Shown: piece after piece, positions 1 through 39,399 of the stretch
Numbering within the stretch: position 1 is the stretch's first letter
How the letters are laid out: each line of letters opens with the position of its first letter
Sequence record: KX467643.1
DNA length: 39,399 nucleotides
Direction: 5' to 3' (one strand)
Notes under the pieces: generated by a model
Database searches by the model: none
Seen by the model: the letters and a program-made list of their open reading frames with translations, nothing else
What the model was told of the DNA's origin: nothing
Made by a program: the position numbers and the translations under genes

Positions 1-459
1 TATCTATATAATATAAGAGAGAAATTGTATAAGTCGTATTTCATACAATTACGTCGTATAACGTATTAGACACGGATACGTCTTATATCTTATAAGACAT
101 TGATATGTCTTATATCTTATACGTATTTCTTACGTCTTATATTCGTACTTCTTACCCCTTACTTCTTTCCTCTTATATTATATAGATATATTCAATACCC
201 CCTATATTCGTTCTTCTTTGAATTTTTCTCGTACCACTTACTTCATATTTGTTATATCATTCTCCTTGCTTCACTCATTCGTTCCCCGTTCGTCCTTTCT
301 TCACTCCTCTTTCTTAACTCGTACTTTCCCTTTCTTAATTCGTCCTTACTACTTACGCCATTCTGAATACTACACTCATTCGTTCTCGTTTTTAACTCGT
401 CTTTTCTCGTTCGTTTTCGTTCGTCTTACTTCACTCGTTCTTTTTTTATTTTCCGTTTT
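1..459. repeat. Left inverted terminal repeat (459 bp)
   Basis: 1-459 matches the reverse complement of 38941-39399 in the stretches compared; identity stops after ...TTTTCCGTTTT at 459. Typical of linear lipothrixvirus/rudivirus genomes. Confidence 0.95.
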
Positions 460-13702: not shown

Positions 13703-13993
13703 ATGCAACTTAAAGCCACAAGTTTTAGGGCGAATGAAAAAATAATATTCTTGTTAAATTCTAACAAACTTTTTTGTGAGACTTACGACGAATTTTTAAA
13801 TAGATTGATTGATGAATGTGAAGGAGCAATAAATTACGCTAACAATGATATAACTGAAACCTTATCGATTTATTCTTTCAAACTATCTTCAGAAACGATT
13901 GGGAAACTTAGCACAATAGCAAAAAAATATAGAATTACTAGAAGTGAAGCTTTCCGCAAACTGATATTAGCAAAGGCTGAGGGGCTTTGCTAA
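13703..13993 (+). CDS. Tandem RHH-like protein, 96 aa
   Basis: TSFRANEKI..TYDEFLNRLI and YSFKLSSETIGKLSTIAKKYRITRSEAFRKLI. Confidence 0.8.
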   Translation: MQLKATSFRANEKIIFLLNSNKLFCETYDEFLNRLIDECEGAINYANNDITETLSIYSFKLSSETIGKLSTIAKKYRITRSEAFRKLILAKAEGLC

Positions 13994-14784
13994 TAGTTCA
14001 GGTTGTTAAAAAAGGGTGGTATATAGACTATAAGGTGAGTTCACTTGGCGACATCCCGGCAAAGTTCATACCCTACACAAAAACAATCGGCGAAGAAAAA
14101 TATGGTACAGACGCTATGTGTTACATTGTCTTTCCGTTACGACGAATGGAGCCATCCTTTATTCGTGGAGGGTACAATTTGCGAACCTTTGGTGAACGAG
14201 AAAGAGCAAATCAAGGAGATGGAGGAGGAATTAGAGGATATGATCCTGGACTTGTTTGGTATTCAAGTATTATCTTTGCTAGAGGACGAGGGGGTATGGT
14301 ATGGGGGTGCAGTGGGACGACGGATAGTTTGGTACCACAGGTATCCGGGCGACGGGGGGGAATATACATGGTAGACGCTAAACAGATATTGAAGCTTGAT
14401 ATTGATGTTGACGTGAATTTTTATGACCCTAACTGGTTGCTCGAGAAGAAATTACAACAACTTCACGCACTAGGGTATCAAGAAGAAGACGCGTGGTGGG
14501 AATTTTCGCCTTCTGGAAAACATATTCATATTATTATAGTTTTGAAAGACCCCGTTTCAACTAAAGAACTGCTTGATCTCCAATTTCTTCTTGGCGACGA
14601 TCACAAACGCGTTTATTTTAACTATTTAAGATATTCAGTGATGGGTGAGGACGCCGTTCATTTCAACGTGCTTTATACGTACAAAAAGTCCTTAACTTTT
14701 TCTGACAAACTTAAGGCAATTTTACGACATTGGTTTAGGTCAAAGCAATATTCGAAAAATCGCAATGATGGACAAACTACGTGA
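13987..14784 (+). CDS. 265-aa ORF whose C-terminal 138 aa (ATG 14368) is a minimal AEP primase-like domain
   Basis: LDIDVD (DxD), SPSGKHIH (SxxGxH), LLGDDHKR; TTG start with GAGGGG RBS; internal ATG 14368 preceded by a G7 run. Confidence 0.7.
   Translation: MLIVQVVKKGWYIDYKVSSLGDIPAKFIPYTKTIGEEKYGTDAMCYIVFPLRRMEPSFIRGGYNLRTFGERERANQGDGGGIRGYDPGLVWYSSIIFARGRGGMVWGCSGTTDSLVPQVSGRRGGIYMVDAKQILKLDIDVDVNFYDPNWLLEKKLQQLHALGYQEEDAWWEFSPSGKHIHIIIVLKDPVSTKELLDLQFLLGDDHKRVYFNYLRYSVMGEDAVHFNVLYTYKKSLTFSDKLKAILRHWFRSKQYSKNRNDGQTT
14102..14374 (+). CDS. Acidic 90-aa protein overlapping the 265-aa ORF in the +1 frame
   Basis: MVQTLCVTLSFRY...EQIKEMEEELEDMILDLFG reads like a natural protein; its stop overlaps the primase-domain ATG. 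Confidence 0.55.
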   Translation: MVQTLCVTLSFRYDEWSHPLFVEGTICEPLVNEKEQIKEMEEELEDMILDLFGIQVLSLLEDEGVWYGGAVGRRIVWYHRYPGDGGEYTW

Positions 14785-38940: not shown

Positions 38941-39399
38941 AAAACGGAAAATAAAAAAAGAACGAGTGAAGTAAGACGAACGAAAACGAACGAGAAAAGA
39001 CGAGTTAAAAACGAGAACGAATGAGTGTAGTATTCAGAATGGCGTAAGTAGTAAGGACGAATTAAGAAAGGGAAAGTACGAGTTAAGAAAGAGGAGTGAA
39101 GAAAGGACGAACGGGGAACGAATGAGTGAAGCAAGGAGAATGATATAACAAATATGAAGTAAGTGGTACGAGAAAAATTCAAAGAAGAACGAATATAGGG
39201 GGTATTGAATATATCTATATAATATAAGAGGAAAGAAGTAAGGGGTAAGAAGTACGAATATAAGACGTAAGAAATACGTATAAGATATAAGACATATCAA
39301 TGTCTTATAAGATATAAGACGTATCCGTGTCTAATACGTTATACGACGTAATTGTATGAAATACGACTTATACAATTTCTCTCTTATATTATATAGATA
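38941..39399. repeat. Right inverted terminal repeat (459 bp)
   Basis: Reverse complement of 1-459. Confidence 0.95.

Follow-up and report, generated by a model that had tools for sequence, protein, structure and literature searches.

The inverted repeat at the tip of the SIFV2 genome record: a probable fold-back copy at a terminus common to related viruses

How the ends of lipothrixvirus genomes are built and copied is unsettled. For lipothrixvirus-related ends, the ICTV profile gives only covalently linked strands (rudivirus SIRV1) or terminal proteins (AFV1). The question is raised again by record KX467643.1, the 39,399-bp sequence of the betalipothrixvirus SIFV2, which is labelled complete genome (the SIFV record is labelled partial) and which, over its full length, is the window analysed here. 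A 2015 review gave the sequence as unpublished, and a 2024 paper that used this virus describes it as 'not extensively characterized'. An earlier note on this DNA had read nt 1-188 as a self-folding telomere, in which the terminal 19 nt pair with an internal copy and enclose alternative hairpins. Is this tip the end of the packaged genome, or was it added to an end that lies further in?

The outer repeat and the terminus common to relatives

The outer repeat is there as claimed: nt 170-188 are the exact reverse complement of nt 1-19, and when the comparison is widened to nt 1-24 and the reverse complement of 165-188, 23 of 24 positions agree, with one indel. The 459 nt of the left inverted terminal repeat (1-459, top strand) are identical to the reverse complement of the right end (38941-39399, bottom strand), so that tip and inner arm are also found at the right end, at 39381-39399 and 39212-39230. 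The region is AT-rich and built from related repeat units, and several weaker inverted matches to nt 5-18 are found in it; a chance match was nevertheless effectively ruled out by 20,000 first-order Markov simulations of nt 1-400, matched in composition, none of which gave a terminal word with an inverted downstream copy longer than 11 nt.

The terminal region of SIFV2 was aligned by blastn to those of SIFV (78% identity) and AFV9 (70%). Both records (AF440571.2 and EU545650.1, respectively) start with CGAGAGAGAAA, which falls not on nt 1 of SIFV2 but on nt 14-24 of its top strand (TAAGAGAGAAA); AFV9 has the same start at both ends and SIFV has one additional C at its right end. A metagenome scan for the conserved box described below gave 17 related contigs, under eight assembly or project names, once chance matches, some of them in gut-metagenome contigs, had been set aside by a context filter. 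Ten of the 17 start from 1 to about 10 nt inside the GAGAGAGAAA motif and none of the ten runs past it; the other seven comprise six that start further in, within the repeat array, and one turn-back contig, Ga0208312_100002. SIFV, AFV9 and the ten hot-spring contigs all start 0-10 nt from CGAGAGAGAAA, contig ends being no strict proof of physical ends. Among 11 aligned termini, only that of SIFV2 has sequence upstream of the (C)GAGAGAGAAA motif. The records of AFV3, AFV6, AFV7 and AFV8 are partial and their recorded ends were not alignable here.

The internal register of the repeats leads to the same position. In SIFV and AFV9, the first two ACGTC units are found at positions 38 and 65. Those of SIFV2, at 51 and 78, are in the same register as in the two relatives (38, 65) once nt 14 is taken as the start of the count. 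The exactness of these 38- and 65-nt distances from motif to ACGTC suggests an array of proteins whose positions are counted from the physical end. From these findings we conclude that the physical end of this lineage is (C)CGAGAGAGAAA, with nt 14 as the equivalent position in SIFV2. The family-conserved terminal motif at 14-24, also present as CGAGAGAGAAA in the metagenome genome, is then the probable true 5' end, and nt 14 or a position next to it is most likely where the packaged SIFV2 genome stops, with the motif (C/T)(G/A)AGAGAGAAA. With this common end situated within the record, the true end is probably elsewhere than at nt 1.

What lies beyond is a 13-nt tip (1-13, top strand), seen in this record only, which is the exact reverse complement of 176-188. 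It is followed by the hexamer TAAGAG (14-19), which is complementary to CTCTTA at 170-175 and is, as read from the sequence, a candidate site for fold-back annealing. Its first two bases are a further peculiarity: SIFV2 has TA where its relatives carry an otherwise invariant CG, and TA is complementary to nt 174-175, the internal template.

The junction was also looked for elsewhere. A scan of IMG/VR with the SIFV2 junction word gave 35 matches, all unrelated, and a scan of genome contigs, in which a CRISPR spacer across the junction was sought, gave unrelated bacteria only. The box pattern retrieved only SIFV and AFV9 from IMG/VR, a loose terminal pattern gave about 120 chance matches in the same database, and an exact-protein look-up of gp02 returned the GenBank record itself only.

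The conserved box and a second turn-back

The internal partner of the tip is part of an element with a distribution of its own. The box (170-202, top strand; 33 nt) reads CTCTT.TATTATATAGATATATT, then five variable bases, then CCCCC, and the 19 nt at its left edge make up the repeat's inner arm. The columns equivalent to 181-192 and 198-202 are invariant in all 11 aligned termini, which makes it the most conserved element of the terminal repeat among the Icelandic, Kamchatkan and metagenome relatives. In the 17 metagenome contigs it was found 40-242 nt from the contig end, always in one orientation and never internally; it is also present at 270-310 in SIFV and 140-178 in AFV9, the overall distance from the end being 40-290 nt. 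The box might serve as a promoter or as a binding site for protein. For the terminal 12-mers of the relatives, no conserved complementary partner was found beside the box, the best matches being scattered over the pyrimidine-rich repeat.

Several other features of the box region may be recorded. Many metagenome relatives have a perfect G+C hairpin and a run of T after the box, and in three relatives (L159, L169 and L211) the box is duplicated, 72 nt apart. The top strand of the left terminal repeat is pyrimidine-rich from nt 170 on (C 80 versus G 22 and T 142 versus A 46 over 170-459) and the extreme tip is purine-rich. The conserved word ATTTTTCTCGTA at 222-233 (ATTTTTCTCATG in AFV9), which in SIFV and AFV9 lies 41 nt after the start of the box, is a degenerate copy of the terminal motif in inverted orientation; it agrees with the complement of the SIFV2 terminal 12-mer at 10 of 12 positions, maybe by coincidence in pyrimidine-rich sequence.

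SIFV2 is not the only case of a sequence running past the common terminus. Ga0208312_100002 (IMG/VR 3300027931_000001) is a 45,683-bp betalipothrixvirus genome from a metagenome, whose Cas4-like protein is 68% identical to that of SIFV2; searches of IMG/VR based on Cas4 retrieved only SIFV, AFV9 and this genome. Its first 83 nt recur exactly, as reverse complement, at nt 143-225 of the contig; CGAGAGAG follows from nt 84 on, and the two contig ends are alike. In this complete-looking contig, nt 1-225 form an 89% imperfect palindrome, with perfect 83-nt arms and a 59-nt centre that starts with the terminal motif, and the outer end of the arm adjoins the (CT)n tract ahead of the box. SIFV2 and this genome are the only two that run past the common terminus (by 13 and 83 nt, respectively), in both cases with an exact reverse complement of nearby sequence. 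The partner sites differ: that of SIFV2 is inside the box, and that of the metagenome genome comes ahead of the pyrimidine tract located in front of the box, so that the two extensions lack homology to each other. The same metagenome virus is also represented by the assemblies L158 and L237, both of which begin 9 nt inside the motif without any turn-back; the extension is therefore not a stable part of that genome. Its junction has no usable overlap, and simple annealing of a 3' end does not explain this second case.

Turn-backs of this sort are what covalently closed hairpin ends, or the junctions of head-to-head concatemers, could leave in a record: in SIFV2, nt 20-169 would form a large, imperfectly paired terminal loop, and the opposite strand would begin with the 19 nt. 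Rudiviruses, which belong to the same order (Ligamenvirales), have closed hairpin ends, two assemblies turn back at the same motif, and the 225-nt imperfect palindrome of the metagenome genome speaks for this reading too. Closed ends should, however, turn back in every assembly, and only 2 of 14 termini do so, the ten contigs and the two Sanger-era reference records (SIFV and AFV9) stopping at the motif, which counts against closed hairpins. Moreover, the boundaries of the loop and the partner sites differ between SIFV2 and the metagenome genome, and in SIFV the loop would be made of seven direct repeats which fold poorly (z = -2.0). According to a preprint from the laboratory that deposited the SIFV2 sequence, there is no covalent link at lipothrixviral termini, and the Lipothrixviridae lack the rudiviral Rep. 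Taken with the evidence on both sides, closed ends appear very improbable.

A possible third turn-back is seen in AFV6. Its partial record opens, within the first 30 nt, with a small palindrome (TTCTCTA, GA, TAGAGAA) just before the word TAGAGAATG, which is similar to the SIFV-lineage terminal motif; either one more short turn-back or chance could account for it.

Folding of the terminal region

The inner stems listed in the earlier note are all present in SIFV2, at 23-30/43-50, 80-86/92-98 and 92-100/105-113, as is an exact 15-nt direct repeat at 80 and 107. The hairpins at 80-98 and 92-113 were said to be mutually exclusive, and indeed they cannot coexist, because both use nt 92-98. Folded as single-stranded DNA, nt 1-190 gave -28.8 kcal/mol (z = -6.5). 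Without the extra tip and its partner, nt 14-169 gave a z of -3.0, so that about half of the signal is owed to the outer stem. On its own this stem amounts to -9.3 kcal/mol at 37°C, -0.4 at 60°C and +6.3 at 78°C, which is in the temperature range of the host, and the energies of the three small inner hairpins are all above zero from 70°C upward; these values derive from nearest-neighbour parameters for naked DNA and are extrapolated. Because of this extrapolation, minimum-energy folds at 70°C and above made no sense and only the energies of the named stems were used. These calculations predict that none of the stems would be stable at 78°C.

The inner pairings are poorly conserved. The sub-terminal stem-loop (23-50, top strand; 8 bp with a 12-nt loop) starts 10 nt after the probable end, and a stem-loop about 10 nt past the end is likewise found in AFV9, SIFV, L194 and Ga0208312_100002; the pairings differ, and the exact 23-30/43-50 stem is specific to SIFV2. 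At the equivalent site, no stem-loop was seen in L202, only a short stem in L231, and in L169 a weak fold of another kind. The z-scores for this site range from -0.2 to -3.7.

The other hairpins belong to a degenerate array of 27-nt repeats (50-160, top strand), with GTCTTATA repeat units. In SIFV2, ACGTC is found at 51, 78 and 132, GTCTTA at 80, 107 and 134, and the 27-nt spacing of direct repeats also at 77, 104 and 131; the inverted word TAAGAC at 93 faces the GTCTTA at 80 and at 107, and this is what generates the 80-98 and 92-113 hairpins. At the same place SIFV has seven perfect 27-nt units (22-205), all direct, with no palindromes analogous to 80-113; AFV9 has such palindromes, in a similar degenerate array with some inverted units. 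As judged from these arrays, the inner hairpins are by-products of repeat units lying in both orientations, their exact pairings not being conserved. Inverted sites for protein binding account for the pattern no less well than would a DNA fold under selection, and the 27-nt-phased units are likely to be protein-binding sites.

The copy number of the unit varies among close relatives (seven perfect copies in SIFV, about four degenerate ones in SIFV2). Contigs of relatives from two hot-spring runs have fewer units (joints 82>160 and 93>170); the public reads looked at, as contigs, came from four hot-spring metagenome runs and cover small shares of the region.

These results bear on another explanation, namely that the 13 extra nt are real packaged DNA, a recent fold-back duplication that became fixed, the nested repeat being either a priming fold or two inverted sites for an end protein. 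The record is labelled a complete genome and comes from an experienced laboratory, the repeat is perfect and far beyond chance, its partner lies within the most conserved element of the terminal repeat, and the fold of nt 1-190 stands well out from its background. Against this, the tip is missing in SIFV, the closest relative, which has CG and CCG at its ends where a SIFV2-like tip would give A, and likewise in AFV9 and at the ten contig ends; it would bury and alter a motif that is conserved in viruses from Iceland, Kamchatka and other hot springs, and the stem that it forms is calculated at about +6 kcal/mol at 78°C. We regard a fixed duplication as rather unlikely.

What then became of the self-folding telomere? 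The notion that a fold-back gave rise to the 19-nt repeat stood up, since nt 1-13 are exactly what a 3' end adds after annealing at TAAGAG and a second virus has a similar turn-back at the same motif. The notion of a conserved, built-in telomere did not. Thirteen of the 19 terminal bases that make the outer pairing have no counterpart in SIFV, AFV9 and the ten metagenome contig ends, the inner pairings are not shared either, and the end common to the relatives is inside the record. With the outer pairing absent from the other termini examined and the common end at nt 14, the observations that the earlier note had named as fatal to its proposal (pairings not conserved in relatives, or true ends extending beyond the sequence) have largely been made, the true end, however, probably lying inward. 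Because the outer 13 bases lie beyond the end common to relatives, they are most likely a snap-back copy and not a built-in telomere. The common terminus, the fixed register of the repeat units and the conserved box are solid.

A proposed origin of the tip and comparison with known systems

The reading that we favour, as the probable though by no means certain one, is that nt 1-13 are a fold-back copy made at a true end near nt 14 and joined through TAAGAG/CTCTTA; with about the same reserve, it is probable that the packaged genome lacks the outer 13 nt. What the sequences show is that the extension copies its partner exactly in inverted orientation, sets out from the terminus common to the relatives and occurs in the SIFV2 record alone. 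It could have been made as follows. Inward from the SIFV2 end one would meet the short stem-loop, then the 27-nt-phased array, then the conserved 33-nt box. The complementary strand, once single-stranded, would have its last 6 nt (CTCTTA) free to anneal to the TAAGAG located 150 nt away on the same strand, beside the box. A polymerase would extend the annealed 3' end, adding the complement of nt 13 down to nt 1, and reads of such molecules would take the assembler briefly back along the inverted path. The outcome would be a perfect inverted repeat of 19 nt, 13 of them copied and 6 contributed by the overlap. The true 2-nt tip (CG) would be lost as the contig followed the fold-back reads, hence the TA, as specified by the internal template.

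Such a fold-back could have arisen in infected cells, as a self-primed replication intermediate, or in the laboratory, during amplification or library preparation. The arm lengths, 19 and 83, might correspond to common assembler word sizes, as could be left where a word-based assembler meets a turn-back; this is a conjecture. That both turn-backs represent real intracellular molecules, the 3' end of a strand displaced during replication, with its conserved (CT)n complement of the terminal motif, folding back and priming its own conversion to duplex, seems to us unlikely. The hairpin-linked dimers so formed would be resolved by a helicase and the PD-(D/E)XK nuclease encoded beside the terminal repeat. 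If true, this would amount to a rolling-hairpin-like step in a 40-kb double-stranded archaeal virus, and to the first sequence-level clue to the copying of betalipothrixvirus ends.

Whichever the source, the apparent self-folding telomere in the SIFV2 record should not serve as a model before the ends are mapped. The gain is a single motif, (C)CGAGAGAGAAA, to which the terminus of the SIFV/AFV9 lineage is now assigned, with the fixed unit register and the conserved box behind it. Fold-back junctions located exactly at that motif in two independent data sets are either an assembly warning for linear viruses or a lead towards self-priming.

How does this end compare with those of known systems? 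Betalipothrixviruses (SIFV, AFV3, AFV6-9) reportedly have inverted terminal repeats with regularly spaced direct repeats. SIFV2 conforms to this, with its 459-nt terminal repeat, its 27-nt-phased direct repeats and a motif and box in common with SIFV and AFV9; it departs from it by the 13-nt inverted tip past the common terminus, found in the SIFV2 record only.

AFV1, a gammalipothrixvirus, is like SIFV2 in belonging to the same virus family and in having a linear genome with open ends; its end sequences are presumably unrelated to those of SIFV2. According to the part of the ICTV profile that cites Pina et al. 2014, the AFV1 ends carry a terminal protein. As regards protein-primed ends of the phi29/adenovirus type, a (GA)4 reiteration is present at the common end, and no DNA polymerase is annotated in SIFV2.

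The parvoviruses (AAV) offer the closest formal analogy to the fold, with an outer stem that encloses smaller palindromes at the extreme end and a folded-back 3' end which can prime synthesis. In contrast to them, SIFV2 has a 39-kb double-stranded genome, and its stem is AT-rich, not conserved, closed around a poorly paired 150-nt interior and predicted to be unstable at 78°C; a terminal palindrome conserved among the relatives was not found, the SIFV2 outer arm being absent from the 12 other termini examined. The SIFV2 annotation contains neither a Rep (HUH-type or other) nor a DNA polymerase. A Pfam search of ten genes (the six beside the left terminal repeat and four further candidates) found no HUH-type Rep and identified only the PD-(D/E)XK (Cas4-like) nuclease and two SF2 helicases; for gp27 (13987-14784), no family was found at E-values up to 0.01.

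Rudiviruses have covalently closed ends, and their strand-displacement replication begins at the termini. The closed telomeres of rudiviruses (SIRV1/2) and poxviruses recall SIFV2 by the related virus order, the long terminal repeats and strand-displacement replication that starts at the termini; they differ in that the contigs of SIFV2 relatives end openly at one motif and lipothrixviral ends are, as said above, reported not to be covalently linked.

Snap-back or inverted chimeras that arise in DNA amplification and library preparation, and assembler turn-backs at a linear end, have in common with SIFV2 an exact inverted copy of nearby sequence, joined at the physical end of its template via a short overlap. 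Like them too, the copy in Ga0208312_100002 stands in one assembly of its virus and not in two others, L158 and L237; the lack of an overlap in this metagenome case is a difference.
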